From the NCBI RefSeq assembly GCF_000150275.1, contig NW_002060974.1, positions 279,744 through 343,743 of the forward strand: 64,000 nt of DNA, read 5' to 3'. The stretch comes from Trichoplax adhaerens. Taxonomy: Eukaryota > Animalia > Placozoa. Positions within the stretch are counted from its first letter, which is position 1; each line of letters starts with the position of its first letter. The notes under the pieces were generated by a model. It was not told the origin of the DNA. It did not search any database and worked only from the letters and a program-made list of their open reading frames with translations. Positions 1 through 29,832 of the stretch are shown piece after piece. The position numbers and the translations under genes were made by a program.

Positions 1-223
1 TGAATACGTGGAAGTGTCTAAATTATATTTTGTGAGTTTAGGCATATACTTTACTGTATTGTTAGCTCGGTAAATATATGGACTGTGTCAAAGTTACCGC
101 AGTGATTTCCTTACTGTAAGTAGACTAAACGAAGGGTTAACAGTAAACTATTGATTTCTAATTCTTTTGCAATGATATTGATCTAATTGTATTATTTAAT
201 TCAATACGCTGGCAAATAAATAG

Positions 224-3200: not shown

Positions 3201-6200
3201 TGTAAGATTACAGCCTGTACAATCTAGCATTATAATAAGAAAGAAATTCTGAAATCTTATATAATATTAGCTATTCTTTATTCAGCAGAAGTTACCCAGT
3301 TATATAGGAAGTATCGTCTACAAAAATATGTTATTTCTGCTATTACTATACCTAACTTAAAATTTACAAGTCTAGTAAACATACAAACTGGCTTTCCAAC
3401 ATTATCCTACTTTTTTCTACTTCCCTTGCCTAAATAATATTTCTAGGTCGTAGCATCAGACCTGTAGTTACATCTACATCATCAAAACATAATAATATTA
3501 GTTTCTACTGAATTTATCAATAACAAGCTACATAAGGAATTACATATACTATACAATTGCTACGTATAAATGCCGATATGAATGGCATAAATGGCATTCC
3601 CCTAGTTTAGTACGTAATGATTGATAATAGATTATAAATAATAAGATTTTTACTTTACGATACTGATAGTATTGTATCACTAACGCCACTAACTAATGAA
3701 ATATCTTTTATAATATGTTGCGGTAGTTTAACAATAAAATTCATCTAGAGTATAAGAGGTTTCTTTTAGTGTAAATTGTTCAATATAGATTGTACTTAAA
3801 TGAAGTTATCAGTTATGCTACAGTACATTGAAAAAAAACTTTACTAAGAATAAGTTATACCGTATTTAGAAGTATATACCATATCTATTTTTCTATATCA
3901 GGCATAAATAACTACTAATTACACTGTTCATATACTTTTAGTCGATAACGTTATCTTTATCACCAAGATAGATATCTGTAAGATATCACTACATTCTACT
4001 AAGTTATTTAAGAAAGCTAATCTTGCTAACGTTAAATTAAAATATTGAACTGCAAGTAGACACCGTGGTTTCGATATGACTTAGCGTATATAGGATAAAT
4101 TCCGATTTGGCTCATATAAATATCATATCCACTATTATGTTATAATTTAGAGAGCATAAAATAGCGCTATAGAAATTTACAGCATGGATATAACATTAAT
4201 ATGATAACAAAAATGATAACAAAAATTAGATAACTTCAAGCTAAAGCTGTTTATGCTATACTATCGAAAATAATATATTAACAGAATCAATTGGACAAAC
4301 TGAACCTCCGATATCACCTCCATTGTCGCCTCTATTGTCGCCTTCAAACTCCATTTCTGATTTTCCTTGCGAACGCCAAGGTAATGTTTTGTAAATTGGT
4401 GATGAAATAAAGAGCTCGAAACAATGACTTAAAGTGTACTTTATTTACGGTGATTGTTTAGCTTCATGTTGATAGTGCTAATATCATTTATCAGCTATTA
4501 TCAATATTTAGGTGTAATAAAAAGTATCATTTTCATAATTATATCTATTATCATTTCATATACAGTAGTTGTATTTAGCGCTAATTACAAATGGAATAAA
4601 TTCGAGTATGCTACGGCAGCTTTTATGTGATATAAGTTAAAATTGATTCGATATGAAATTACTTAAGATATGATAAGAACTATAACAAATTGAAATACCC
4701 TGACTAATGTCAGACTATTAGTACGATACTTATTCGAAATATTTATGAAATACAATGGAAATCTTAGATTTGATTTACGATATTCGTGGAATCTCCGATA
4801 TTGAGGGAAATAAAAGTTCGATCCGAAGGGGGTCATTGAGGAGAGCAATGCCGTTTTTTCCGTCAAAACGTACCCTAACTTTAAGTAGGGACGCTCAAGA
4901 AAGAAATGAAAGCACGTTGAAATTATTATTCGAAATTGACCCGAAAAAATGTAAATTAGGACCTTGGGATCCTTACTTACATGAGGTTAGTTTGTATAGA
5001 ATAAAAAGATTACATTGCATGGTGCAGAAGGTTCGTCATTTTGTTATAAAGTATAGAGAAAACCATGAAAGGGGTTAAGTAAGTATGATGCAGCATTTAA
5101 GAAGCAGTACAAATTTCTTTTTATCACAAATATAGCATTATACTATGGCGAATTAAAGTACTACGATAACATATTTTACTGCTCCATTTATGGACATAGA
5201 TTAAGGCTTGAACTCAAAAATGATTCCTATATTTGAATATGACGCCTGCAATCATTTTAATTTTAATCTTTTCTAAAAATGTTAGCTACATAAAACGTAA
5301 CTTTTTTCCGCTTGTTTGTTAAGAATAGTTGATTTGGATATAAGTGCTTTCTATAAGTCCGATCTATAAATCTATGCCATATAAGTGAATTCAGTCATTT
5401 AATCTATATTAGTTTAAATCTAAAAGTACCTAAGATTGTACTTAAAATTGCTCCCATAATACTCATGGCTACATTTGCCAAATTGAATTTATAGAAGAGG
5501 ACTGAATTATCATAAAATGCTATTTTTAAAATAGAAATTAAAATTTAAACTCTAATGGAAAAATCCATTTTAAACAGGTTTATATTCGATTAAAGAAGCT
5601 GAAAGAAAATTCTTTAAAGGATGAAGAAAATCAGCATTTAGTCGATAGAACTAAATTAAATGCGTTTGAGTCAGAATTGGAGTCAAAAATTTATTCTGAA
5701 TCTCGAGAATTTATATATAAGTATCTGAAAAAAAAATACTCTAGGTAATGATATTTGTATCTAAATTCAAGCATCAAGTTATACTTGTTCATACGGAAAT
5801 TAGAAAGCTATTATAATAAGTTTTTTGCTAAGGATGCTGGCTATTTATCGCTCTTCAAGTATTGAAATTATAACATATAATTGGCAACAATAGTTATACA
5901 TACGGTGTTTAAACACTTTGCGAACAGATGATAGAAATTTTTGAAAATATGTATTAAAAGTACAATAATTTTAACAGGCACTTTTACGGCGCCATTTGTG
6001 ATGTGCAAGTAAATAATTTAATGTAATATTACTGATAGTCATAGATTTGATGTCGTCTATTCGTACGATATATTATAATATTTATTTAATATTATAACTG
6101 CAAAAAAATACTGATATTTTTGACATGTTACGCATTTTAAACTAGATCACTCAAAACTGTTACAAGCCATATGGAAGAAATAGCGAAACAAAATTTAAAA

Positions 6201-7596
6201 GTACTACGGCTACCTTATAATCTGGAACTGCCTTATGATAAAATTAGGAGTGAATTTAAGAAGATGGAGAAAGAAAATTTACCTGAACGTAAATTGCATT
6301 ATTTAATTAAAGCATTTGGAAAGCTGCCGAAAGAGCAACGAGGTCTCAAATATCTAAATTATAATTATTTTTAAATCAACACGCATCAGTTTTAAATTGT
6401 TTCTTGGCAGGGTAGAAAATACAAATATCTTATTATGTTTTTCTTTAGATTTAAAGACTATGGTATACTGCATTAGTAAAATTTCCTTGCAGACGTTGGT
6501 TTATGAAGCCGATTACATCGATAATTTGGTTGATCCCAAAATGTTACATAATGAAAGTTTCCAAAAGGCATTCGTTACATTTAGAAATACAATATTGTTC
6601 TTACAGCAGTTGAATTCATCAGGAGAAGATTACCTATCTAATTTGCTCAAGGATAAGCAAAAAATTGTTAGGCTGATCATTCTTGCAGATGAAAATGTTA
6701 GTTTTGAGATGTTTTAAATTGATTTAACTACAGAAATAAATGATTCAAGTTTTCATAAATAATTTTGTTTCGGTAAACTTTAGGACTGTCCAGTTGCTCA
6801 AAGTATTGCTATCGAACCTCAAAAAACGATACGTGATTTATGTAAGCTACATCTACAAAGAATGATCAACGCTACGAGGAACTGCGAGAAATATGTCACT
6901 AATGATTATCGCTGAATTTCATTTTGTATAGATAAAATTTGCAAGTCGTGCACCGAAAGCATTTTAAAATTGCCTTGCAAAGAAGATGAATACATATTAA
7001 GTATCGTGGATAGTAATGACGAATGTAAGTTCAAATAAATTAAGGATCATTTGAAATAACACATCGCGCATTGATCACAAAGTCTGTTTACGAGATTAAC
7101 TGCTGGAACAAATTGTTCCTGCGCCTTAACATTAATAACTTACGTTAAAAGCGGTGCTGTTGATAGCTGAATTATTTATGTTAATTATTCATACAGTATA
7201 GAGATACTGGTATTTGTGGAAATTATAATAGTACAATTATAATTGTAGGATTTCTCACTGGTAGCTAAAGTATTTAGTTGCTACATTTGCTTGTGAATAG
7301 ATTTCTTACAATCTATAGTGCAGAACGTACATGAGTTAATGCATAATCTTAATCTAATTTCTTACTAACTTTGAAGCTTTATTAATTAAAATATTATTTA
7401 AGAATTTAAAGATTTTGAAGTGGTATAATATAATTCTAAATAATCTATTTATATAGTAAATTCTTTGGATGATAATGAAGATAAAGTCCAGTTAGCCATA
7501 CATGGGTCAGGCGACTATGCTGAGGCAATATCATCCGATTTCATTAATTTCATATACCATCGGAATAACGCAATTCAAAACTTTGTTTACGAATAA
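224..7596 (+). CDS. Gene A: RIN (Ras and Rab interactor)-like protein, SH2 - Pro-rich - VPS9-like - RA-like; 5' part lies outside the window
   Basis: Phase-consistent GT-AG exons: 224-255, 418-526, 1593-1700 (SH2: ETMLQYEAAG TFFVINTQ...FKTIDELIGCY...LKVQLKV), 1853-1924, 2016-2036, 4285-4380 (PPISPPLSPLLSP), 4768-4985, 5578-5744, 6146-6342, 6449-6696 (LVYEADYIDNLVDPKMLHNE, like RIN VPS9 LDTEIEYMMELLDPSLLHGE), 6784-6841, 6932-7024, 7457-7596 (ends NFVYE*). Near exon-for-exon paralogue of the 3' half of gene B; domain order matches RIN1/2/3. Confidence 0.8.
2305..2937 (-). mobile_element. Solo-LTR-like insertion (633 bp) in gene A intron
   Basis: Termini TGTCAC...GTAACA; perfect 5-bp TSD CCCAT (2300-2304, 2938-2942); hairpin TGTCACAAAACAGCTTTGCAACA at the left end; shares ACTTAAACGCCT and the terminal segment with the reverse complement of 26636-27135. 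Confidence 0.7.
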
Positions 7597-11695: not shown

Positions 11696-12053
11696 ATGGA
11701 CAGTGACGATGATATTTATGACTGCATGCTGGAAAGTTCAGTCAAGCTAGTCTATGATCGAATACTTCCAAAGTTAGAAAGACAACTACCGACGAAAAAT
11801 TTTTGTAAAGGAGCTTTCAAACTTGGAATAATTGATTACGATAAAGTACTGACAGCGTCTCATGAACATATTAGTCCGGATATTAATAGGAAAATATTGG
11901 AATATATCGATTCTGAACAGTTAGATGATATCAAAGATTGGCTATCAATTATGTTTGATGATGAGAAATGCCGTCCAATTGCTTATGAATTCATCAACGA
12001 ATTAAGTGAATGGAAGTTAGAAGAACTTGTAGAAAATATAAACATAAAAGATG
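11696..12053 (+). CDS. Gene B first coding exon: CARD-like death-fold domain
   Basis: catcATGG start with an in-frame stop upstream and a strong G|GTAAG donor. The ~95-aa helical pattern RILPKLERQL..KNFCKGAFKLGIIDYDKV...NRKILEYIDSEQLDDIKDWLSIM resembles the CARD consensus (L..gil, arkLLd.l, f..fl..L). Judged by eye. Confidence 0.5.
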
Positions 12054-15000
12054 GTAAGAATAGGAGAATAGGCATCGGTTCCGGTACATAACATAATCTG
12101 CCTTTATGACTTCGTTTGTGTCTTTTAATCCTAAGTCACGATGACATGTTAACTAGCTATGCTTTCCATACTCATTGCTGCGTTTTTTTAATGTTCATAA
12201 AGTTTATATTAATAGTTTATTAGTATTTCCGTTACGATAAATTGATAAGACGAGATCATTAATAGTCTTTAAGGAAAAGACCTCATGATCATATACGCAA
12301 TATTGGTATTTCGTTAATCTTCATGATCGCACGTTGTTCTATCACAGTATTAATTCTTTCAATGTCTAAACATCTTAGTACTTATTAACCTATAACGGCT
12401 TAACAGTAAAAGGCTAAACCTATTACTTTGTAGAGCGCTGTAGTTAACAAGATGTGCCAAGGGTCATAAACTACGTCAGCATTATCATTTGTGTTCGATC
12501 TACGAACTTTATGTCAAGGATCTTTCGTTTGCAGTTTCACCGTATAATTATTTATAGTATTGGCCGAAAATGAAATTCTTGTCAGTAGTCAGGCATCATT
12601 AAAGATCAAACAAACGATTCAATTTTGTGACAACTTCCATTCTAAAATGAGAAAATTGTCACGCCTATATTAATCATGATATTAAAAGTAGCAAATTAGC
12701 AGTCAATTTATTAATTGTGCGTGAAAGCTATCATCCTAAACCAAGGGTAAAAGCGGCAATAAGCCAAAACGTCCACGATCTATCACGATATTATTTTTGC
12801 TTACTTTACAACTAGAAATGCAGACGATTTGCTCATTCTCTAAAGTTATAGAATTACAACATCTGTCTTAGACTAAATTATCAAAAATAGCTTCAAATCC
12901 ATGAACTAGTTCTTTTCTTTGTTAGACATAGAAACTAAGTTAGCTAATGTAGATTTTATGTGATTTAGAGGTATCTGTATCTGTAATAATTAATATATAT
13001 ATATATTATGCATTAAACTAGCACAATGTTCGAGATCAAACTGATACCAGAAAAAGTGTGATTTTAAAGGCTAGCTAACACGGTTGCTTTTGCCCTGTCG
13101 ATTGAAATAGGCGCGATTGCACATTTCTTGACTGCTTCCTTGACTATAATTGATAACCAATCATACCTTAATTCCATACTTTATCTATATACGCAATTTG
13201 TCAATCTTGAAACAAAAACTATACTTGCAATAAACGATAATTAATATCTCAGTATCACCATCATAAGATGTTTGCAGTATAAGAGTTATGACCTGCTTAA
13301 AAATATTTTGGCTAAGATTGGTTGATAAGCTGTTAAACAGTACTTTCGATTGTTATCATCCTCATGGCTGTAGCTACATTAAATGCTACGAAGAATTTTC
13401 TAATTCTCAAACAGCAGGAGCAATATTGCGTGATAGATTAATCTATTTGATATCGACTTACGTGCTTGGTAAATAGAATAAACTGATTTGTAATGAGAAA
13501 TAAAATTGATAATAATAGTTCCAAATAACTATTGCATGTACACAGTTGATTTGTTCTAAATAGATGACAAATTTTAAAACTATTCATACGCGCATTAATA
13601 TGACTTATATGACTTAGATGTCGGTAGATTTGTACTTTACAGGAAACTGAATCTGATGCTATACTTGATATTCCTTTTGTTAATCTTAAATTTAATTGAT
13701 TTCCTTTATTATAGGGTACATTTTGATTTCAGACAAGCTTATTAGCGGTAAGATCTACAAGATAGTAGAACGTATTAAAATTTAAATAGCTTACATAAAA
13801 GTCTATAGATATTCTAACTTAAGTCTATAAAAAGTAAAAGTGATGAATTTTATTGATCTTGCCTGTTGAGCTATTGCAATTATCTAATATTATCAAATTT
13901 TACAAATTTTTACCATTTTGAATAAACAATCTTCAATAATTATATGTTTCATCATTTAGAACATTAATTTATCCTAAAAGTGTTAACGATTCCAAAAATT
14001 GATATATTTTACTAGAATATTTTTAATAGTAAAGCCTCATCATCATTAAAATAATCTATTTTGAATGTACCGTATTTACGATAGTTTGGGTGTACTTGAT
14101 ATACAACAGATTCAGCTTATGCGGGTATACTAATTATGCTTGCACATGGTCCTTATAATCCTTTTTGATATTCTAATTTTTGCTAGTATCCAAGCTTGAT
14201 TCAGTGCAAATGGATGTGGATGAACCGGTTATAATTGTTCAAGGTAAGTTATAAAATCATTTTACGGCTTTAATTAAATTTTAGCTACAGTCTTTAAGAG
14301 TACATCACCAACGATCAGAAAATTATTTGACATTAGCTAAACGTCAATTCTACTGGTATCAAGCTGTAGTGGCATAAAATCTTTATTTTGACTTAAGATG
14401 ATAGTGTTATGTAGTGAAACTGTTAGATAAGCTGCTATTGTCAACATGCTATGTAGGAGTAAACTAGATGTAACTTGAAAATAATACCAAACCTAGGGCT
14501 GTTGCCAATAATAGATATATACAAGTAATGTTTGGGATAATTCAAGTATGTTGATTTCAGCTTCGTAGAATATAATACTTATCATAGAATTTAATTCTTA
14601 TACTAAGTTCTGTAAGTGTTAGGTGAAGCTGTTCGAAATCGTTATGATGTAAACAAGTTAGATAACGTGTTTAAGCAGTTACGCTTTTCTGTTATTGTTG
14701 TTCTTAGCCCTTCTTTTCTAAGATCTGCTGTTATAAGAAGTTTTCCTTGTCTGTCAGAGCTTGTTGTACTATTACGTAGTATCTCAATCAATAGAGAATC
14801 AGCAATAAGATCTGCTATTATAAAATTATTTGTGAGATCTACACTCCAATTATATTATAGTTAGTAGAATAGGTTTTGTTACAGTTCGGGCTATAGTTAG
14901 TTTACACTTACCGATTTAGCAAAATCAACTTGTCATGTTTACTTTAAAGATTTTGTGTGCCACTGTCACAACTACCCTTGCGACATAAGAAAACAACACA

Positions 15001-18000
15001 GTCCTTATAGTAAACTTTACCTTAATCCGCAGAACTAATTCCCTAGGCTAGGGTGCAGTAATTTGAATCCTTGCGAAGTACTAACTCGCTCAACACAATA
15101 TACGATATAAAACTATCACACAACTTAGCCTTAACCTGAATCATATTTTATCGATCACAGTCCTTCTTATATACTCTTTCAGTGGTTATAAACATATTTA
15201 CTATGCTATTAACATATTTCAATAACAAACATGTTATTAAGATTGAATTATCAAATACGAACATTCGAGGTAATAAACAATTTCATGCGTAAATCTACTT
15301 CGACTGCAAGCCCTGTCAAGCTCCTATGTTCTCGATACTTGTAACATATTACTCTATCATCATAATATCATAATAACTTAGGTTATTACTGACAAGAACA
15401 ATTCCTAAAGTAGTAGTTCATACCTCTAAAAAGTTAAAAAAAAAATGTCATCATAAACTACACATCCAAAACTAAGTTATTTTGATGACTGAGAGCCACA
15501 TAAGATACATTGTTACTACGTTCTTTAATTATGGTTAACAAAATAATAATTTAAATTGTTTGATTTTAACAGATTCAATTAGTCGCAAAAGTTTTCCCAT
15601 CAATAAGGATCATTCTGTGGATGTTCCTATCCATGCTGAGGATATAAAACATAAAGTGAATGTTAGCGTTCCTTTTCCTATTCATTATCGTCCGATGTCT
15701 ACAGAAATAGACATATTTCCACTAGTAACCCGCTTTACAGCTATGGCAAGTGCATCGTTAGTGATCAAGACGTGGTTGCAATTACCAGATTCTACAAGTG
15801 ATCAAGGCAATATTAGAGACTGTCAATTAACATGCTGGATTCCACACTACAAGCAAATAAAGCAACTGTTTTGCAAGTCAGAAAAATCTGTGCAACAAAA
15901 TGATAAAATTATAGTCGCTCGTAGAATAAACAGCGATAGCACCAAATTTACAGAAATAGGTACTAAATTTTCTATTGATGAAAATAAAGCAACCGATGAT
16001 GGCGTTGTAGTAAAATGCAATTGCAGCTATCAATCTGTTATTAATTGGTTTTGGAAGATACCGCAGTGGTTACTCGATGCTGCAAGATTAGGGCCAAAGT
16101 ATTATTATGACTACTTTCGATATCCAGTTCAATACTTTGTTGGCGTTAAGCCAATGAAGGATAAACCGGGACATTTTACTTTAATAGCCCTTGTAAAGAA
16201 TATACGTTGTCCGTTACCCTCTCGCATAGGGGATGAATTAGAGTTACTTGCTTCAAGTGGCGATGAAACTAGACTCCTCAGTAGTGGTCGGCTACAAATC
16301 AATCTTGCAGGAGATATTAAACCTCTTAACGGATTAATTTGGGTAGAACTATTAAACAAAATTGCTTACTTTGATGGAATGTATTCGGTTACGCAATTTG
16401 CTTGTATGGGTCATTTTGACGCCGATAATGGGATTTACTCTAAAGGTTCCGTAGAATTTCGTTATATCGATCCAGGCCCAAATTGTCATCCAGATGCATC
16501 TAACCCTGACTATAATGTCGAAAATGAATCCGTTGTTGTTGAGTTTAGCTATGCTATAGGTTATATAAGTGTGTCTAATTTAAATATTGATACTAAACAT
16601 TATCTCAAAATAGTCCAAATTAAATTTTACATCTGATTAAGAACTTGTTACTGTGGAATTATTTTTAACTTTCCTTGATAGTAAATTATAAGGAGAGGCT
16701 TATAAATGGCGTTATTGTAACATGCAATTGCTGTATGTCAATTGAAAATTTATTATATGGTTCGGTCCTTATTTAGATCATGAAATGACAAGAAAATATT
16801 CCATAATCCGAGGGAATGTTTCAGATCCTGAAACGACTGGTAAAGTCGACGCAAGGTAAATAAATATTCTAAAGAGAGTTTATGACTAATAGTTGAAATC
16901 TTCTAAGATTGAGAGATGTGCTACAAAATAGGATGGTAAAGTTATAAGGTTATTGACGTGCAAGTTCGAATCACGGGTAATGCTAAATATTGAAAGAATA
17001 GAATGACAATACTTTACATAGTCAAAGTTAAGATTTCCTAACTGATGGCTCCATATAGTTTATTTTATGCCACAAAGTAAATTAATTATAAGAATCTTTC
17101 AAATTTATTCTTATTTACGAAACATTGGTTAGCAAAATTAGTTGACAGTAAAACCGTACCTGATGCAGATTGATTCGTAGACTATCTCTTATATTCTATA
17201 TGTAGTCTCAGTGATATCCTAATAAGCTAAGTTTAAGTGGGTTAATAGTGGACAATACCCATGAAATAATCTACAATATTGGAAGCAGATTTAAAAATAC
17301 GGATCTGCTGTTGGCACTGATTCTCAACTATAAATGGAAGTATACGCGGGATTGACGATGCTATTGAGGAAGTGTCTGATATTTACATTGTACACGCGAT
17401 AAAGTGCCTCAAAATCAGCAATGATCAATTTTCGATAACTTGCAGTACTTACTTCATTACATAAAACTACTTCCACGACCTAGAATAAGTCTAACTAACC
17501 CTAATGGATAAGATCTTCTGCTTATATACATACTGTTATATACAATATGACTCAACTATATTTAGATCTAAATTTCTGATGGATCTACATTACATCACAT
17601 TACTCTCACTAATCTCTAGTATCCAACCATCTTAATAAGACCTTCCTAACTAAAGCTGCAATGTCTATTGTTACTATTTAAAACGGATATGCGCTTAATT
17701 CAATCTTAAGACTCCTGTATACGTACAATTTTATACATATAGTAAATATATATTACAACTTTGCATATTGCTTAGCGACTTCTTGCAATCGATTATGCTA
17801 TTTTTACAACTACATTACTGTTTAAAAATATCTCGATATCTGCAATAATTGACCTCAGTAGCAAGAAAAACTTTGATTGACGATCAGTTTGAGCTCAATC
17901 GCATTCAGTTTTAATTCCACCCTAACTATCTTCCTATGAGTGTAATAAAGTATTATATAATCTAAATAATGCCTAGGAAGCTAAACATTACTGTAATCAT

Positions 18001-21000
18001 TAAATTACTCCTGCCCTAATCATTCTTTAGTTATCACCAATTATGTCTCTGATGTAGTTAAAGTTAAAATTTATACGAGAAAGTTCATGTTCTATAAATT
18101 TTTCAGCCATCTATGCGATACTTTTATTCGTGAACAACGTGTATTGGAAAAATAATCGATTTAACAATTTTCGACTCAATGCTTTTTGAATTGTAAATAA
18201 ATAGGTCTCCACAACCCGATCCATTTACAGACACTCCAATGCATAATTCAAAAGTAAGTCTGGTACGTTTAAGAGAAAGCTAATTTAAATACAGGATTGC
18301 AGTGGTCTTGATGTTACTTTCCTTTTGACAGTTTATGTCTAATTACATTCTTAACATTAGTGTAAATAATTATTTTACTGTTATATTAATTTAAAATTGT
18401 ATATTTCTAGTTCTGTAACATCTAAGTAATTTAGATTTCGAAAATATCAGTGACCTTTATTCTTGTTTTCATTAATGTTTTCGATTAGTTCTTATCTCAT
18501 ATCGATATTATATATTTTTCACATTTCCGTGCTGGGAATTTATACGAGTACGTAAACATTTTCGCATTTACGCTAGTGTTAAAATCATTTTTGAAAGACA
18601 TACAAATCTCGATCTACAGGCCAATACTTAAAATGTAGAATGAAACAATTCATGCTTACCTTTAGGCTTATCTTCGTCGATATTAGCCATTTGTACAAGT
18701 AAAAATGCTAACGAACCTTCATTATTGAGGGGCTGCAGTAATTACATATCTCATTTATTTCTAAACTACAAAATTTAAATTTTATTAAGCAACCAAACAA
18801 TTTTACTTACCACATCATCATACAGAAATTAATTATCAGTATGTAGAATAATATTATAGAAATGTGAAATTATCTATTCAAATATATGAGACATCGTAGC
18901 TGAAAACTTCATTTGGAGTTCTAAAATAGGTTATTTAATGATAACTAATAAAGCTACTCCGTAGCATATTTATAACTGGAATAATTTTACTATGAACGAT
19001 GTCAAAGTTGCCATACAATATTTGATTAATGACAGTATCGTTTTGCCAAGATGATACTGATCAATATAAGTTGATCTTGTTTCACATTAGAGATTTGCTC
19101 AATGTTAATAACTCAGATTTTGAGTTAGACGATTGCAAACCTTAGGGGTTGTAAAACCCAAGTACCAAAGGATGTATTACCATTAATAGTAATGTAATCA
19201 AAAACTGCACTGGTTGTGCTGCGACTATCCATAGGCAGATCTATAGTGATATCACTAGATTAAAATATAAATGCACACTATGATATTCGATTCACTAAGA
19301 TATTTTGTCTATCTATTATGGCTAATGGCCTGCTCTGAATTTCATTTATCAAATGGAGTTGATATCAAATAGGTTTAAAAATTAATTTTTCAATCGTTTA
19401 ATCAAGGAACTATCGCAAAATCTATCTCTGATTGATTCTATAGAAGATACCAGACACTTATGGTATCAGGAAGACATGACTAAAGTTAACGGTTAGTTAC
19501 TATGAAAAAGCACGGTTTTGCAATAATTGCCATGTTAAATGTCTGATATGTACTATAAATAGTATCGCGTTGAGCTTAAATCTAGCAAAATTTCCGATTT
19601 TCTAATAATTCTTAATGCTAATAAAAATTCTTTGTACGGGATAGCCATAGTATTCCTTCAAGATCAACCTATCGGCGTACGTGAAATAACTATTCAATAT
19701 TTATTATGTGCTTATAAATAGTATTTAGGTTTGATGGTGTCTACAAATTAAAGAATAGAACCACTGTATATTTACTAGTCTATTTCTGTCAATATTTCTA
19801 CATATATGCTAATCATAGCTTTCGAAAATTTTACTATGCTTCAATTAATCGCTTTAGCGAATGCTGCATAATCTTCATCGAATTATTAAAAATTTTTAAA
19901 TACATTGATCTGATGATACTCGTATATTAAGACACTTTAATTACTATAATAGTCGATTGCACAAATTTAATAGTAATTATACAATGTTTGTACTTTTATA
20001 TTTAACATTCATGATAAAGTATAGCTATTAATGCCTTTATCTGAATACAAGTTTCCGACAAGACTTACACATATAAGTAACGCATTAGAAACTAATTAAA
20101 ATTATGTCGATAAAGTTTTATCCATGATATATCTAATATCCAATAGACGTTTGTGGTTAGAAAAAGTACTCGCCATCATTGTGAGGCAATTAGCGTCAAA
20201 GTAACCGTTGATGGTAATATAGGACACTTTCTTTTCAAAAACAACTCAAATGGTAAGTTTTCGAAGAATAGAAGTTTAACTGAAAGTTGCTACCTTTATT
20301 TATTGGTAAATTAATCGTAAGGTATGCTTGAATGTGATTCAATTGCAATGTCAGTAGAAGATTGTCCGGTATTGGGAACGATATAAAGACGACACTATAT
20401 AGAAGATTAAATGATGATAGACGAACATATTTTCCATTCTACTCAAATATTTTGCTTGAAAGATTTGTGTTATTTACTTTACGTATCACTAAAGATGAGA
20501 TTACGAGATGAAAGCCGCACAGTAAAATGTGTGGCTGTTGTTAAACTTTCTGTTCCTTGCAATGCGTGAATAAGGATAACAGTAGTTGTTTTTCATTAGC
20601 AATTATATTGTACATACACGAAAAATGTTGAAGATATTTTTTAGCATCTACTTGTCACAACCCTCACTTGTGGCAAAGGAAAGTAAAGAACTCTAGTGTA
20701 GTTACTTAAAAACTTGGGCTATTTCTCCCAGTACTTTCAGTTTCTATGAGAGAAGTATTTGAGAACTCGATTTCTCGGCTGATCTCCACAGACAACTGAC
20801 TAATTATTACACTATTCTTCACGATATGAGTCTTGCCGTTTCTTGAGCAATTACTCTCTTTATTCTACAAACACGCGCGCTTAAATAGGTTTCTACAGTG
20901 AATTCCAATATTAACGAGTGAGAATTCATGCTTTACAAGTTACATTAATTAGTATAATACCATTACTAAATATACATGTCGATATTCTCAGATTTAGATA

Positions 21001-24000
21001 GCTACAAGCTATCAGGTGTTAAGACGCTTAACCTTCGTCCATATACAGCTCAATTTTTAGAGATTAACATACCTTATAAACCTACAGTGAATTAACTGCT
21101 AACAACTTCTATTTTTATCTCATTTCTACCATCCTATTATCAGCTACAAGCGCATTAAAACATAGCACATAACCTTATCTTATCCATTCATAAGCATTCA
21201 TTAATTTACAGTTACTTAATTAGTAACGGCGTACCGTGACACTACTTTATACTATAAAAATAAATTTTAGAATTAATAAGATTATAAAAGCTATTCTGCT
21301 AAAATGTACTACAAATTTAAGTATTATGTTTCTAGCAAAATTGACATGAAAAATAACTTATTACAAAAATACGAATTCTAGTTTTATATTTCATCCATTA
21401 ATGGAAGATATTGCAAATATGACAATCCTATTACCCTACCCGTCTTATATCGTTCATATTGCAAATGATATACATGTATATGACTCGATGCATAATATTC
21501 AGTAGTGAAAGCTAAAAGATATTTCTAATGATATCAACAATCACTAAAATAGTGAATATCCTGATAGTTATAGCCTGACTGTAAACACTTTTATTAACTA
21601 AAGGAGAGCCTTGAAATTTCAACAGTTTCAATTTCTGCTTTAATTAATTAATTAAAAAAGTCTTAGCTGTCAAAAATGGATACTGTTTACTTTAAGAATA
21701 TAATTATCATTGATATATTTCAGAATGGTCTATTGCAGACTTTGAAAGAAAGTTTGTATCACTGGAAGATTTGTTGACCCACTATACTAATAATAAGGAC
21801 AAAGAGTTACAAGTAAAATTACGATTTCCACGACCAATTCATAGCAATGCAAAAGTAGAACCAGAGACACAATCGCTACCTGGAGAGATTTCCGGTGAGA
21901 TAGTAAAATTGTAAGATTTAAACATATTTCAGGATAGATTACATTAAAATAAAGTCACTAATTTTTACGTTCAGATATCTATGATGTAAGAGAGCGTTGA
22001 GGATATGAAATGTATTTAACAATGTAAATTACATGTCCTTAAATGGTAATATCCAGCAGAAACAAAGCTCATTAAACACCTATGTCTTCTTAATAGTAAA
22101 AGTTTTCATTCCTTTTAGAGTAAGGAAATGTAATTTATGATTGAGCTGACGAAATTACTATTCTGAATTCCTTAAGAATCCCAAATTTAGTTATTTAACC
22201 CCAAAATAGACGTCTAATATCTTTTCAGCCGTTACATTTAAGATTAAAACTAAACTTGTTATAGTTAGTATATCGTAAATTAATAAAATTGTCGTAGGTA
22301 ATTAACTAGTTTTGAATAATCTGCCATCTAAAATTACTCGGAAATTACTGAATATGTGATTGGTCATTGTAAATAGTCAGGTCTAGTTAGCGGCAGTAAC
22401 ATCCTGTAATATCAACTAGTCATCAAATTATAATAGCTTATATGTTGTATTGATTGTGGTATATTACCTACTTAGCTACTCCTACTTTGCTAATGCATTA
22501 ATTTAAACTAAGTCTGTGAAGAAAAACTAACTAAAACAGCAGATGAATGATCTTGAATAAGTTATTACCATTAAAATTGGTTGCAAAATTGTATTGATGA
22601 TTAGCAAGTTATTTGAGATCAGTAATCGATAAGCTTAGTCGTAATTAATAAATTTTAAATTAAAATTTTCTAGACTGCACCATGCAGCATGTTAGCATTC
22701 AAGACTATAATGAAGTATCGAATCTTGAGAAATTCGAGTATATCTTGTCTGATTCAGAAGAAAATACAGGTTTATCAATTGAATTATGGTACCAGTTTAC
22801 ATTAATCATTTCGAAATAGATCAGTTGCTATTCTGCTACCAAAAGACTACTACTATCTACTAACGCTACTAAAGCAATAAATGAAGGTGAATACGTTTAC
22901 ATGAAATCATTTCCGAATGAGTCTAAGGAAGAGATTTTAAATCAACAGCTAAAATCACGAAAAGGTTTTTATTAATATCTTACTGAAACTTTTTAATATC
23001 GAATTAACTCTATTGAAAACTGTGAGATAAATTAATGTGTAAATATAATCAATTAACATTTGTTATTAACAAAGACCTAAAAAATCTAATGAACCTATTT
23101 ATGATAACTCTTATTTCATTTCATTTAATACATTCTGATTAACGATATCATCCTCTGAATATCAACAATTAGCCGTATATGATATACAGGTAACAAACTA
23201 ACAGTATGTTTCGAGAAAATTTGCATTATCGGCAGTTGCTTCAATATTAAGTTAAAAGTGAATTAATTTTATATCTGACTGACATTATGGTATTTCAGCA
23301 TAATCTAGCGATCAGGTTTAGTTATCAGTAATTTAGATTAATCTCAGAAATATAGCAACGTTTCATTACCTACGATAAAAATACAATACCTATGATTGAA
23401 GGTGAATAGGAGTGGACTAATGATAGGCGTAATAAGTTGCAACTGTCTTAACCTATTTACTAAAATGATAAGGCAGTCTGAGAAACTATATAAGCCTATT
23501 GATTTAAGCGGCATTAAGATATTAGATTTCATTTACTGTGACTCATTTTAAAGCTAACGATTGTAACTGCAACCTGAAACGATTTATTGTAACAAGAAGA
23601 CATTAAAATCTTATTCGAAACTATAAAGTGCCCTGTCAAGGGAGAACTGTAAAGATCGGATATAAGTTTGATGGTTAAAATTATAACAGAAGTAGAATAT
23701 TTTTGTAGTTATGATGGTCGTACTATATAACTTTCATTTAAGTATAATAACACTGTAAATACATGTTAACGAAAAAAATCAATTTAATTATAGTCGAAAT
23801 AATTGCAGTTTTATTTCTATGGTTGCGTATATCAATGTTAAATATTTGCTTGCCGATGTCGTAGTTTGAGATTAAACTATCAATTGTTCAATCGGCTCTA
23901 CGGCATTTTAGTTAACTTACTAATCAAAATTCTGGCTATTAAATGTTGGAGAAATATAGTAGTTCTAGAGTGTTCTACTGAAATAGTTACTAAATGATTT

Positions 24001-27000
24001 GGTAGCTCCGTTTTATGCTGTAGCTGTACATATCTTGTCTTTTAGAAAGCAATTAGAAGAGTTAAGGCGTCTAAATCGCTTTGGATGAAAAGAAATGTTG
24101 ATATAAGTACAGGTATTTAAAATATTTTATCGTATTTTTAGTTATCTCGATCGAAAAAAACGAAAATAGCTATATATAACTATCTACCGTTTTATTGAAA
24201 ATACTGCACTTACTGTAAATTCGTTAATTTTAATTAATAATTATAATCATTTGATTAATATCAACATTCTGGCTGTATTATTTAAAATATTGGCGAATAA
24301 ACAGCTGAGGAGTTGCTGCAGCAAAAGGCAGCAGGAGTAAGTTATTATGCATTACCTCGTACTGTTATGAATTAAATATCCGAATATTTAGTTTATGAGG
24401 ACTTAGATATATGGTCTTCATCTATTTTACAAATCGACCTGATCTCAAAAGTTATTTACGCCAGCAATGTACTTTTTTGCGCTCATAATTCTAATATTTT
24501 GGTAGACATTTCTGGTGATAGCTACCGAAACTTCGCATGCATTTGTGCTGTTGGTAAAATTGAAAAATGACTGTTCTGTAGTGGCCAAATTTAGAATTTT
24601 ATCACGAATGGGCGGTAAGCTTATACTTGATGATTTAAACAATTTTGGCAGTTGAAGAATTAACCGGTACAATACATGAAGAAAATTGTATGCATTATCA
24701 GTAACAAATCTCTGAGTATACAAGCTCGCTTGCTTCGTATTAAGACTTTCTCTATGTAGTCATCTGAGCAAACTGTAACGGTAATGTTTTTTGAAAGTGC
24801 AAAAGTGATATGAAGTAAGGCACTACTGTATACAACGTATAATAGTCGGTTATACTTACCATAATTATTATTGATGTCAGAAATGATGAACAAGTGTTTA
24901 CTTGCCATAAGTACTACAGTAATTCAGCTCAGGGATGATACATATAGTCGTCTTCACTTAATTATAAATCTAGCTTGAGATTATAGCTGAATAATGTAAG
25001 CGTAAAAATTGCATTGTGTGGTACTTCGATGGACAGTGATCAACGAATAAATATATCTATTCGGAATATTAGATCGACTAGGATAAAATAGCTACCGGTA
25101 ACAAATAGCCTCGTATTCTATGAGTTATAATTTAAAAGTAACAAAATATTGGATTTGATAAAACTAAACAATCATCAATCATCGAATCAACTATTTTAAA
25201 TAAGCCTATTACGTAAATTTGAGTAAAGTACCTTATAAAGGCGGTAAATAAATGAATATGATAACTGCAAAAAATATTCCATCAGAACTTCAGTTAACTT
25301 CATAATCGTATTTATATTTGCATTGCACCTTGCAACACTTCGCGAAATGATATAATCTGAAGAATTCGCTGATTCTTATGCTTTGTGCATACTCGTGTAA
25401 TTATTTATTCTTCAATCTTAGTAACCGCGAAGATAATAATATTTAAGCAGTGGATTAGATAATGAATTCTTTATTTGCAATAAATTTTTACGGAGATAAG
25501 TTTAGTTTGGTAACTATCCGCTATATAATTTTTTAATATCAATATTTAATTAAAATCGTATTGATTTGAAGGCATTCTTGGGTAATTAAAATTTTATTAG
25601 ATGTTCGAATTGATGGCTTCAATCAAAGTTTTAACACAATTGATGACTTGATTGGGTGTTATGTTTGCTTTCGTGACAAAGAATTAAAACTCCAATTACA
25701 AGTAATTGGTAAGACAATATCAGATATATCATTATTTTATTTTTGCTACCATACAGGCACTTCATGCAGCAAATGATACCATATGAAATGAAAAATTTAA
25801 TAGTTTTGCATAAGACTAAACATTGTCTCTAAAAGCCAATGTAATAGAATAAGTAACGTAAGTTCTATTCGCTACCCAAAGACGACGAACTCGACGACGT
25901 TATTAATGAAGACATTGGCCAGACTGATAACCTTCCCCAACTGCTACGTACAGAACCGGTAGCTCCAGATGGTCTCGATAGTGGTAGATTTTTAAGACAC
26001 ATTGGCCTGACTGATAATCTTCCCCAACGGCTACCTACAGAACCGGTAGTTCCAGATGATCTCGATAATGGTAGGTTTTCAAGTCTTATTACTTCTTATT
26101 TGCTTTCAAGCGCATAACTGGGAATGATGAATTACTTTCTTGTATTATCCATCTTTAATAGGACAAGAAAGACTCCAAACTGCCCAAGATGGTAGGTGTG
26201 CTTCCCTTATAAGGATTTTTTTTTTTTCAACCAATGCCATTCAAATTACTATATTTAATCGGGAAATTAAATATGAAAAATTCCGAAACTTTCATCATTG
26301 GCTTATAAAATTACGCTATCTCAACATCTAGTTTAAGTTCATTATATTTACCTGGTAAAAATTTACTATATTCATTTCGTTTATATAAGAGTACCTTAAT
26401 TTTAATTTCCCCTATATATTGATAGAAATTTTCTTAGTATTCTTCCTTAGATAATAACAAATTTGATAGAGCTATTAACATTAAACATCATTTCCATAGT
26501 AGTCTCTATTTTACGGGCTTTATTCGTGGTACTATTTTAGTCGCATCGGTTTCTGAGTTTTTCATAGATTATGTACTATATAATATAGCAATTAGAGATC
26601 AAATTCTAGTTTTAAGAAATAATATTATATGGTAGTGTCACGGTAGTAACTACTGTAAATTAAATAGCTAAATTTACCGAATTTAGCATTTAAATATGGT
26701 GATTACAATTACCTTACAGCAGGTGCCTTTGAAGTTGTAATGTGCTAGAGTAAACTGTACGTCGAACTGTAACAGTATAGCCCATATAGTAATTGATTAT
26801 AGTGCAAGCTCTTGATTGTAATACTAACAAATAGTAGTTCATAAGTGTACTGAAATGATTCTGTAAATGGATAGACTGTAGTTCGACTATATAAATCACT
26901 TAGTAGATGTCCATATCTTCAAATATTGTTGTAAGATGATTCCTCAATGTTAGCTGCTGTAAAAGGGTACATAAGTCCGGCAGATAGTTTAAAAAACCTA

Positions 27001-29832
27001 ATTCTCCGATTATGCAGCGTAGAAGCAAAGGCGTTTAAGTTTTTATGAGTGGTCAAATGTTACTAAATCCTGGAGTCTTTCGAAATTTAGAGATTTGTTT
27101 TCACGTAAACCTTGTCACAAAGCTGCTTTATGACAAGTAGTAAAGAGTATTTAATGTAAGCAGATACTCTAGTTTTATAATGAATATTTACTAGTAAAAT
27201 GAATTAAGAATTAGTTAAGAGCATTTACTGCAACCCTATTAAAATTCAAAGAACATGAAAGATCATACTATAGATTTCTATTAGATGTTTAAATATATTA
27301 AGCTAATATTGAATGTATGGCGCATTGAAGCTAAGTTACAATATATTCGTTACACGAAAAAGGGATTTTAGATTGGATTTATGATTTTCGTGGAATCAGC
27401 AATCATGAGATTCGTCAAAATGAATTTAAAAATCAGTCTCAGCGAAAAAAAAAAATTTCAGGTCTTTTGGGTAAACGTAACTCTACTTTTAGAAAAGATA
27501 TTCAGGAACGAAATAAAGAAATGCTTAAAAAATTATTCAAAATTGAACTAAATAAATGCCTGTTAGGGCCATGGGATCTTTATCTACATGAGGTAAGTCT
27601 ATGCAAGGCAGAAAGATAATTTTGAGTAGAGAATAGATTTCTATGATTTTAAAATATAGCAGAAAATAAGAAGGACGTTCGATATGGTCTTAAAAATAAC
27701 ATGAAGCTCATATATCATTAAAAACATAGCATTAAACTTGTACATTACAAATTAAGCTAATTATGTGTTTCACTTCTACATCTTGGAATAAAGTATATGG
27801 TTTAAAATAGAAATTGATTTTAATATAACGGATTTGGGGTACTATTCTCCTCTATTAGTTCAGCCACTTATCTGTGAGGCATAACTAAATTCAGTAATGC
27901 TATATATTCTATTGTCAGATTATACTTTAGACAATATTGAAAATATCATATCAATTGTACTTATCATAGTATTGCTCAAATTAGTTTAAAAAAGAGCACT
28001 GACTATACCGTTAAAGGTTACTGTTATAAATAAAGTTGATGAATTGGATGATGAGGAAATAATTAAATTTTAAACAGGTCTTTATTCGATTGAAAAAACT
28101 GATAAAAGAATCTTTGTCAGCGAAAGAGAATCAGCGTATACTTGCTATCAATAGTACAACTACTGATATGAGTGCTAGAGTGAAGAAATTTGAGCCAGTG
28201 TTGGTAAAAATTATTTTTTCTGCATCATATGGATTTATTTACAAGTATCTGAAAAGTAAACATAAGGGGTAGGGATATTATTATCAAAATTAATCATAGA
28301 ACATCATGCTATTTAAATCAACTTTTAAATCAAATAAAATTAGAAAATAAACCTTGTTTTTGTAAAGCATGATGACTAGTGACTATTTCTCGCTATTTAA
28401 GTTTTGAAATATAGCATAATTATTGATAATTATCAATCTTCCAGTACCAGAGCAATCTAGCACCTTCGATGTGGCCAAAATAGGGCAAAATTTTGAGAGC
28501 ATGATCAAAGCAAGTGTGCCTAAAAAGAAACTAGAGTACGTTACTAAAACATTCGAAATGCTACCAGAATCGTACCAGGGTAAACATGATCAATTTTTCT
28601 TAATTTGCTCTTAACAGAAAAAGCAAATATCTAAACATTTCATTTTTCTGCAGATTTAAAGACCATGGCATACAGCATTAGTAAAACCTCCTTATCTAAG
28701 CTAGTTTACGAAGCCGATTATATTGAAAATTTAATCGACCATGAAATTTTAAATGAAGAATCTAACAAAAAGGCCTTCGTGACATTTAGAAATGCTTTAC
28801 TATTCTTACAAAAGCTAGATTTGTCAGGAAAGGAATACTTGTATAGAATAATTGAAAAAGATCAAGAAATTGTTAGAGTGATATTAATGCCAGATATATG
28901 TAATGTGAGTATAAGATATTTTGTGTTAGCTACAATCTACGGGCAGAAGCTATTTACGCTGTTATGCTAATTTTATTTCTATAACTTAAAGGGCTATCCA
29001 TTTAGTCAAGTTGTTGCTTTAGATCTTCAGGAAACCATTAGTGATTTATGTAAGCTATAAGTTAAAAGTACAATTAATGTTTTTTGAACGGTAAAAAATA
29101 TCCTATTAATTATTGTCACATTTATCACCAAAATTTCATCATCGACAGATAAAAAATGCAGATCATTTGCGACAAAATTATTAGGACCATCATTTAGTTG
29201 CAACTTCCACGTTTTGAGTTTGGTGGACGCTAATAATAAATGTATGTTGAAATTTAGTACGTACACGCGTACTTACTCATATCCTGATATTAACGGATTA
29301 GAAATAATTAACAAGATAGTATTAGTACAGTCATCGTTCATACTCTGTAATATTTAAAATTTAGTTTAAAGATGGCATTTTTAATCATAAATATATGTAT
29401 AATTATCAATATTAGTTATGCTAACAGTCTGAATAGATCCTGGTGTTTTGGAAATAGATAATTTTCTCCTACAGTAACTCTAAGTATAGTATAAGCTCTA
29501 ACTGCTTAAAAATGGATTCTAGATGTAGTGCATCCTATAATACAAGATACACTTGAATAAGTAATATTAATGTGATTTTCTTATGAGCTTCAGGATTATT
29601 GATATTACGCAAATACGTATGCTCTTTGATGGTGAAAAGAATTGAAATTGACAGAACTCTTTTTCCAATGATTATTTATTTTGTAGTGAAATTCATGAAA
29701 GAGGATGAAAGTAAAGTCCAGTTGGCTATATATGGGTTGAAACAAGACGATTACTATGAGGCAATACCATCCGAATTTACTACTTTCGTATTTCATCCGG
29801 ATAAGACTGCTGACAGTCATATTTATGAATAG
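11696..29832 (+). CDS. Gene B: multidomain RIN-like protein, CARD-like - ZU5/UPA-like - SH2 - SH2 - VPS9-like - RA-like
   Basis: Exons: 11696-12053, 13715-13747, 14187-14243, 15573-16559, 16777-~16855, (unresolved linker ~18205), 19444-19491, 19645-19676, 20147-20252, 21724-21894, 22674-22769, 22875-22964, 23173-23189, 24046-24112, 24305-24336, 24506-24614, 25601-25708, 25882-26070, 26162-26191, 27372-27592, 28078-28268, 28461-28579, 28654-28904, 28992-29049, 29149-29241, 29687-29832 (SHIYE*). The 19444-29832 part is well supported; continuity across 16.9-19.4 kb is inferred. Confidence 0.65.
15573..16559 (+). CDS. Gene B 987-nt exon: ZU5/UPA-like module (ankyrin/PIDD/UNC5 type)
   Basis: NWFWKIPQWLLDAARLGPKYYYDYFRYPVQYFV...LLASSGDETRLLSSGRLQINLAGDIKP...KGSVEF parallels ankyrin ZU5-UPA (RFWL...A..LY.E...PYMAKFVVF...[26 protein letters not shown]...GRLSF). 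Acceptor TTAACAG|, phase-1 ends. Confidence 0.65.
19444..21894 (+). CDS. Gene B SH2 domain 1 (canonical, 4 exons)
   Basis: Spliced translation HLWYQEDMTKVNAIVFLQDQPIGTFVVRKSTRHHCEAISVKV...GHFLF...RKFVSLEDLLTHY...LQVKLRFP contains the SH2 hallmarks WY, GTFVVR, F.SL..L..HY and L..P. Confidence 0.85.
20653..21241 (-). mobile_element. Solo-LTR-like insertion (589 bp) in gene B intron
   Basis: Perfect inverted termini TGTCAC...GTGACA; perfect TSD CTACT (20648-20652, 21242-21246); TATA-like TATTTAAG and AATAAA in order on the minus strand; hairpin TGTCACAA...TTGTGGCA at the left end. Confidence 0.75.
24046..25708 (+). CDS. Gene B SH2 domain 2 (RIN-type, degenerate FLVR motif)
   Basis: KSLWMKRNVDISTAEELLQQKAAG TFLVIATETS...FNTIDDLIGCY...LKLQLQV; same 32-nt second exon and intron phases as SH2-1 and the gene A SH2. 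Confidence 0.8.
25912..26080 (+). repeat. In-frame 87-bp (29-aa) tandem duplication inside a gene B exon
   Basis: ACATTGGCC.GACTGATAA.CTTCCCCAAC.GCTAC.TACAGAACCGGTAG.TCCAGATG.TCTCGATA.TGGTAG at 25912 and 25999. Confidence 0.9.
26636..27135 (+). mobile_element. Solo-LTR-like insertion (500 bp) in gene B intron
   Basis: Starts TGTCACGGTA (reverse complement of the TACCGTGACA end of 20653-21241); ends in hairpin TGTCACAAAGCTGCTTTATGACA; TSD GGTAG/AGTAG (4 of 5). Confidence 0.65.

Follow-up and report, generated by a model that had tools for sequence, protein, structure and literature searches.

A tandemly duplicated Trichoplax adhaerens gene that probably joins a helical, ZU5-UPA-like head to a RIN/sprint-type adaptor

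The window analysed here is a stretch of 64,000 nucleotides from the placozoan Trichoplax adhaerens (contig NW_002060974.1), and the gene in question occupies its positions 11,696 to 29,832 on the forward strand. We propose, with a probability of roughly three in four, that this is one tandemly duplicated adaptor gene of the RIN/sprint type which carries a helical domain and a divergent ZU5-UPA-like module at its head. The predicted product would begin with a helical domain of about 119 residues, followed by the ZU5-UPA-like module, a linker, an SH2 domain whose phosphotyrosine pocket is intact and another that lacks the pocket arginine. An acidic proline-bearing repeat, a helical region, a VPS9-like domain and a C-terminal domain would complete it. 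A preliminary description of the same DNA had read it as a fusion of CARD-like, ZU5/UPA, tandem SH2, VPS9 and RA domains in one gene. Its single-gene claim and both SH2 domains hold, whereas other parts of it hold only in modified form or not at all.

RNA contig joints, a colinear gene model from Trichoplax sp. H2 and a paralogue with the same exon order indicate that one gene, which is expressed and has about 27 exons, spans the stretch and has a product of about 1284 residues. The H2 model, RDD40104.1 (1284 residues), is public under the name “Protein sprint” and was used here as the joined form of the gene; the genome searched comprises 105.6 Mb at 30% G+C. RDD40104.1 is colinear with the window from 11696 to 29829 at 95-100% identity, over 26-27 exons. 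When short peptides across each junction were compared with this protein, a GT..AG intron and the peptide were both reproduced at 24 of the 26 junctions, which is all that could be solved. Gene models of the H2 strain were predicted with Maker from evidence that includes transcriptomes (PMC6057997).

Contigs from four public runs, one of them labelled RNA-Seq, were aligned to window positions 15400-21300. In three of the four, which come from three different studies, one contig each has identical in-frame GT..AG joints (16559 to 16777, 16855 to 18205, 18253 to 19407, 19491 to 19645 and 19676 to 20147). The loose end of these contigs after 20252 continues into the exon at 21724, and the loose end before 15573 maps to the 57-nt exon at 14187-14243. 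The large exon at 15573-16559 is spliced in frame to the SH2 exons via small exons. The placement of all modules in one transcript and one open reading frame is borne out by these joints together with the RDD40104.1 mapping, including the proposed link between the exons at 15573-16559 and 20147-20252, which the in-frame contig chain spans in all three runs.

At this locus, exact protein look-up finds two T. adhaerens proteins, TRIADDRAFT_62062 (700 residues) and TRIADDRAFT_62063 (474 residues). These are two halves of one gene, wrongly split. The split arises because TRIADDRAFT_62062 runs past the donor at 22769 to its end (22674-22816), whereas the H2 model splices this donor in frame; TRIADDRAFT_62063 begins inside the second SH2 domain (25570-25708). 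The exons of the gene and the part of its paralogue that lies in the window are as follows.

Exon 1, 11696..12053, forward strand: ATG just after an in-frame stop; 119-residue all-helical N-terminal domain; phase 1 donor; 100% identical to RDD40104.1 residues 1-120.
Exon 2, 13715..13747, forward strand: 33-nt phase 1-1 linker; residues 120-130 of RDD40104.1 and of TRIADDRAFT_62062, from a GT..AG junction solution.
Exon 3, 14187..14243, forward strand: 57-nt phase 1-1 linker, joined to the large exon in RNA and kept in the paralogue.
Exon 4, the large exon, 15573..16559, forward strand: 329 codons, symmetric 1-1; divergent ZU5-UPA-like; seen in RNA contigs.
Exons 5 and 6, 16777-16855 and 18205-18253, forward strand: linker between the ZU5-UPA-like module and the first SH2 domain; RNA joints, matching RDD40104.1.
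Exons 7-10, 19407-19491, 19645-19676, 20147-20252 and 21724-21894, forward strand: first SH2 domain; RNA joints; Pfam SH2 at residues 540-616.
Exons 11-13, 22674-22769, 22875-22964 and 23173-23189, forward strand: linker between the SH2 domains, from the RDD40104.1 mapping and kept in the paralogue.
Exons 14-17, 24046-24112, 24305-24336, 24506-24614 and 25601-25708, forward strand: second SH2 domain; second Pfam SH2 stretch, from the mapping.
Exons 18-19, 25882..26191, forward strand: acidic proline-bearing linker, from translation and mapping; poorly kept in the paralogue.
Exons 20-21, 27363-27592 and 28078-about 28269, forward strand: helical region before the VPS9-like domain, from the mapping and kept in the paralogue.
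VPS9-like exons, about 28435-28579 and 28654-28904, forward strand: sub-threshold Pfam match; 5' boundary of the first exon not solved.
Last three exons, 28992-29049, 29149-29241 and 29687-29832 (with the stop), forward strand: C-terminal domain at the RA position, from the mapping and kept in the paralogue.
3' half of the upstream paralogue, 200..7596, forward strand: second SH2, linker, VPS9-like and C-terminal exons.

The preliminary description had exons on this strand at the right places, but several of its boundaries were off (the first SH2 exon starts at 19407, not at about 19444) and its set was incomplete, with the exons at 13715-13747, 14187-14243, 16777-16855, 18205-18253 and 19645-19676 missed. 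Within the intron between 20252 and 21724 there is also a dispersed, non-coding repeat about 589 bp long (window 20652-21241). It has 184 candidate copies in the genome, and the 40 that were scored are 97-99% identical; its RNA-contig depth is 5-20 times that of the host gene, and each run shows it with different flanks. It resembles a young non-autonomous mobile element that is transcribed.

About 25 kb upstream lies the paralogue, which spans window coordinates -13760 to +7596; its 5' half (-13760 to -151) is outside the window. By tblastn and tblastx each module of the gene is colinear with its counterpart there, at 40-70% amino-acid identity and in the same exon order. Between the two copies, exon 1 and the large exon have ratios of nonsynonymous to synonymous substitution rates (dN/dS) of 0.30 and 0.34, respectively, and a dS of about 0.85-1.06. 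Ratios near 0.3 at this level of synonymous divergence mean that both N-terminal modules are conserved coding sequence and that the duplication is old.

The nature of the large exon emerges from a chain of intermediate families. Among 1.84 billion protein representatives it finds only three clusters, two of them non-self (Logan run SRR30664516 and ENA assembly ERZ27263980). Both are 67%-identical orthologues of another Trichoplax gene, on contig C1412 (8048005-8055500), and presumably come from another placozoan. The C1412 gene consists of a CARD-like first exon, a related ZU5-UPA-like exon and then a Dynamin_N GTPase exon, and, the tandem pair aside, no exon is closer to the large exon than its ZU5-UPA-like one (23-26% identity). 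A genome search with the protein of a C1412 orthologue matches the large exons of three further genes (E 1.4e-6 to 1.7e-3), and in two of these three a Pfam Death exon follows (1.9e-16 and 6.3e-11). In this death-domain-linked family one ZU5 scores 20.4 bits against a cut-off of 21 and a further member 21.0 bits, and HFS, RFS or KFS stands at the expected end of ZU5.

Profile comparisons join these families. The large-exon family (5 sequences) aligns to the death-domain-linked family over 263 columns with an hhalign probability of 98.2% (E 5e-14), and the latter aligns to the second ZU5 of a Trichoplax ankyrin-like gene at 89-94% (E 2e-6 to 1e-7). In the ankyrin-like gene the exon after this second ZU5 holds a 198-bit UPA_2 and Death. 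Column-shuffled controls reach at most 19, compared with hhalign scores of 101.5 and 58.6 for the two comparisons. We read the large exon as a putative divergent ZU5-UPA-type module, whose ZU5 half is well supported and whose UPA half is moderately so. An HFS-type autoproteolysis motif at the ZU5/UPA border is expected of the PIDD and FIIND subtype only. The HFS site aligns with YQS in the window gene, NQS in its paralogue and SFG or SLG in the sister genes; since HFS is replaced in both members of the tandem pair, self-cleavage is not expected. No Death match falls in the window among the 91 genome matches, and the large exon is followed by linker exons and then by SH2.

The downstream part of the gene is probably that of a lineage-specific, divergent member of the RIN/sprint adaptor kind. 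RIN proteins combine SH2, Vps9 and RA domains and are specific to holozoans (PMC6032885). We call this part RIN-like because of its layout (SH2, proline-bearing repeat, helical region and VPS9-like domain), because its VPS9-like exon resembles that of a second RIN-like gene on contig C1403, and because the H2 model bears the name sprint. The two SH2 domains of the preliminary description are confirmed: Pfam finds two SH2 stretches in RDD40104.1 (57 bits), and PDB SH2 matches fall at residues 537-636 and 732-811, the latter to a RasGAP SH2. The first domain retains the FLVR arginine (FVVRKS), and the second has an isoleucine in its place (FLVIAT). The exon at 25882-26070, which follows the second SH2 domain, contains two tandem units of about 28 residues (TDNLPQ.L.TEPV.PD.LD.GRF) for which the paralogue has no clear counterpart.

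The C1403 gene (1387400-1392300, minus strand) has a canonical RIN-like layout of an SH2-like exon, a proline-rich exon, a helical region and a VPS9 exon with (AD)DFIP, and it probably represents the actual RIN orthologue in Trichoplax. In exon-level Pfam searches the VPS9 matches of the window gene come in the right order. Its VPS9 exon is most similar to that of C1403 (37% identity, E 2.5e-4, tblastn over a 40-kb search), and the alignment of the two exons reveals a common motif, EADYIExL. In work on Rabex-5 the Asp-finger aspartate of VPS9 domains is reported to be needed for exchange activity, in which the neighbouring proline also has a role. At this site canonical Trichoplax VPS9 exons have GADDLVP, NADVFLP or (AD)DFIP, whereas the window gene has YQDLKT and its paralogue SLDLKT. 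Because the Asp-finger/Pro motif is lost, a scaffold rather than an enzyme is expected and the label ‘Rab5 guanine nucleotide exchange factor’ is doubtful; in other words, the VPS9-like domain would be catalytically degenerate. We assign the helical region at 27363-28269 to the position of the RIN-homology helical bundle, a tentative identity given by position only. The last 130 residues occupy the position of RA and, judged by their sequence, are not recognisable as RA.

Several observations weigh against this combined reading, and they concern the head, the tail and the transcript. The large exon has no direct Pfam match, no usable ESM Atlas match and no direct language-model match, and a search of PDB sequences with three family profiles finds no ZU5 or UPA protein. 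An AlphaFold2 model of it from 4 sequences has a mean predicted local distance difference test (pLDDT) score of 31 and is unusable, such that the fold is deduced via intermediate profiles only. The UPA half is weak: a merged profile and the ankyrin UPA align over 127 columns with their order preserved (P 6e-4), at 28% probability. The ZU5/UPA assignment of the preliminary description thus survives through intermediate homology, although not through a direct match. (Picornavirus VP2 entries in the PDB search with one of these profiles had E>0.1 and were set aside as noise; a metagenome scan with the large-exon family returned nothing.) In the tail, the VPS9 match over model positions 3-103 reaches 18 bits (E 0.0038), below the cut-off of 27, and TRIADDRAFT_62063 has no Pfam match to RA at E<=10. 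In the transcript, the evidence for continuity from 21.9 to 29.8 kb comes from the open frame, the H2 model and the paralogue rather than from reads, and exon 2 (13715-13747) is backed by gene models alone.

The first group of these observations could also mean that the large exon is a placozoan-specific, beta-rich module that resembles ZU5-UPA superficially, so that its link to canonical ZU5 would be a false transitive inference. The failed structure model and the empty PDB profile searches suit this idea, as do the lack of any match of the large exon to Pfam UPA or UPA_2 and the direct comparison of its family with the ankyrin domains (hhalign P 0.3 for ZU5, 0.011 for UPA). However, each step of the profile chain is strong and far above the shuffled controls, the intermediate family has the hallmarks of ZU5 (a Pfam match at or near the cut-off, HFS in place and a death domain after it), and the merged profile places the ankyrin UPA in the right order. 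We consider the superficial likeness improbable.

With respect to the tail, several searches add nothing in favor of a standard VPS9-RA arrangement. The window is absent from the matches of a genome search with PF02204, TRIADDRAFT_62063 has no BLASTP match to the Rabex-like VPS9 exon, and a genome search with PF00788 finds nothing in the window at E<=1, although it also misses the RA of the canonical RIN-like gene. The preliminary reading of VPS9 followed by RA is therefore retained in part, as a sub-threshold but RIN-like VPS9; the RA domain is not detectable.

The limits of the transcript evidence bear on a further alternative, that two neighbouring genes, one helical/ZU5-UPA and one RIN-like, appear as one because of read-through or a chimeric assembly. 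Two models do stand here in the original T. adhaerens annotation, though split elsewhere (at about 22.8 kb), and the contigs, which were aligned to 15400-21300, cannot prove a single full-length molecule. A merger of this kind would nevertheless have to account for in-frame canonical splices that pass through two small, dedicated coding exons and recur in three independent assemblies, for an existing split that is a donor read-through spliced in frame by the H2 model, and for a paralogue which, though about 50% diverged, has kept the same order of modules. Within the large exon neither a stop codon nor a terminal-exon signal is used. We regard such a merger as very improbable.

Exon 1 is the least certain part of the head. 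It exists in only two copies in the genome, those of the tandem pair. The preliminary description had called it a death-fold or CARD-like N-terminus, and none of the sequence and fold tests that we applied bears this out. There is no Pfam match at E<=10. Against 29 Trichoplax Death exons hhalign gives P 0.02-0.14, and against 17-20 CARD exons P 0.09-0.14, with the same score (14.0) reached by 3 of 30 shuffles. An AlphaFold2 model from 2 sequences has 6-7 helices at a pLDDT of 47, and Foldseek finds no match for it in the PDB at E<=0.001, with non-significant helical proteins only. CARD families are the nearest language-model clusters at a score of 0.83, a value that a third of shuffled proteins reach. 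Placozoan death-like domains may nonetheless be hard-to-detect CARDs (Kamm et al., PMC6321704), and we give roughly even odds that exon 1 has a death fold, possibly that of a divergent CARD.

A stronger claim would be that exon 1 is a true CARD and that a CARD plus ZU5-UPA cassette links caspase or innate-immune assemblies to phosphotyrosine, Ras and endosome inputs. It draws on the language-model neighbours, on the helix count and on the difficulty of detecting placozoan CARDs just mentioned, and also on the recurrence of the cassette itself: a CARD followed by a ZU5-UPA-like module is found elsewhere in this genome. The exon directly upstream of the ZU5-UPA-like exon of the C1412 gene matches the Trichoplax CARD profile at 88% (E 3e-6), and the upstream exon of another sister gene does so at 81% (E 1e-5). 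The C1412 gene, with a helical exon immediately before its ZU5-UPA-like exon, is in this respect like the window gene, but it differs in that its upstream exon matches the CARD profile and exon 1 does not, and in that its downstream part is Dynamin_N rather than SH2-VPS9. Exon 1 has no hhalign similarity to the CARD-like exons upstream in the sister genes. This dissimilarity, the Pfam and Foldseek negatives, the low confidence of the structure model, hhalign values within the shuffled range and a language-model score so often met by shuffled proteins all stand against a true CARD, which we consider doubtful.

We hypothesize that the helical-domain and ZU5-UPA cassette was most likely gained by exon shuffling onto a RIN paralogue. 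This origin is suggested by the phase 1-1 symmetry of the N-terminal exons, by the presence of ZU5-UPA-like exons in several Trichoplax architectures (alongside Death domains, CARD-like exons or a Dynamin_N GTPase), and by the abundance of Death exons, of which at least 91 match Pfam above its cut-off genome-wide; 17 exons match CARD. The phase-1 boundaries noted in the preliminary description are thus upheld, as the exons of the N-terminal modules are symmetric 1-1 and the sister pairs of CARD-like and ZU5-UPA-like exons fit cassette shuffling. Elsewhere in the genome, Death or CARD exons stand beside large single-exon ZU5-UPA-like modules with HFS, for example at C1414:6698490, C1414:8902947, C1409:5308591, C1344:28737-30293 and C1414:12655822-12656778.

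How such a protein might work can be sketched for the RIN/sprint-type adaptor that we favour. The first SH2 domain would dock the protein on tyrosine-phosphorylated partners, and the VPS9-like and C-terminal domains may serve as a scaffold that binds Rab5-type and Ras-type GTPases, and not as an exchange factor. At the head, the non-cleaving ZU5-UPA-like module and its helical partner could form an intramolecular lock or a docking surface for death-fold proteins. One may go further and suppose that a divergent CARD and a non-cleaving ZU5-UPA have been wired onto a RIN-type adaptor with a dead VPS9, so as to recruit death-fold assemblies to activated receptors or endosomes; we consider this unlikely. 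We know of no other animal in which an inflammasome- or PIDDosome-type cassette is coupled to a RIN-type adaptor. Any link to caspases or immunity is speculation.

The order of SH2, proline-bearing linker, helical region, VPS9 and C-terminal domain is the same as in RIN1-3 and Drosophila sprint. The window gene departs from these proteins in having two SH2 domains, the second without the FLVR arginine, instead of one, in a VPS9 domain that is sub-threshold and lacks the Asp-finger/Pro, in an RA that is not detectable, and in about 480 extra N-terminal residues that form the helical and ZU5-UPA-like head. To our knowledge, such a head is present in no described RIN. The likeness of the module to ankyrin, UNC5, PIDD1 and the FIIND of NLRP1/CARD8 consists in its homology to exons of the ZU5-UPA type that stand before death domains in Trichoplax and are linked to the second ZU5 of an ankyrin-like gene, with the whole module contained in one shuffling-prone 1-1 exon. 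In contrast to those proteins, it has neither a direct Pfam ZU5 or UPA match nor HFS, and it is followed by SH2 and not by a death fold, so that any death-fold partner would have to be N-terminal. As to novelty, which had been suggested before, the full open reading frame is already public as an unremarked gene model; the architecture itself is undescribed in the literature searched, where we found no paper that combines ZU5 with VPS9 and none that names these genes.

These results correct the annotation of T. adhaerens, in which TRIADDRAFT_62062 and TRIADDRAFT_62063 should be one gene, and they illustrate that placozoan exons to which Pfam is blind can be placed by stepping through paralogues within the genome. 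A ZU5-UPA module at the head of a RIN-type adaptor, maintained by purifying selection in two old paralogues, would be a new use of this module. The gene, a product of very active domain shuffling, is so far restricted to placozoans, and the functions suggested for it are predictions from its sequence. It provides a concrete protein with which to ask whether death-fold assemblies were linked to tyrosine-kinase, Ras and endosome signalling in early animals.

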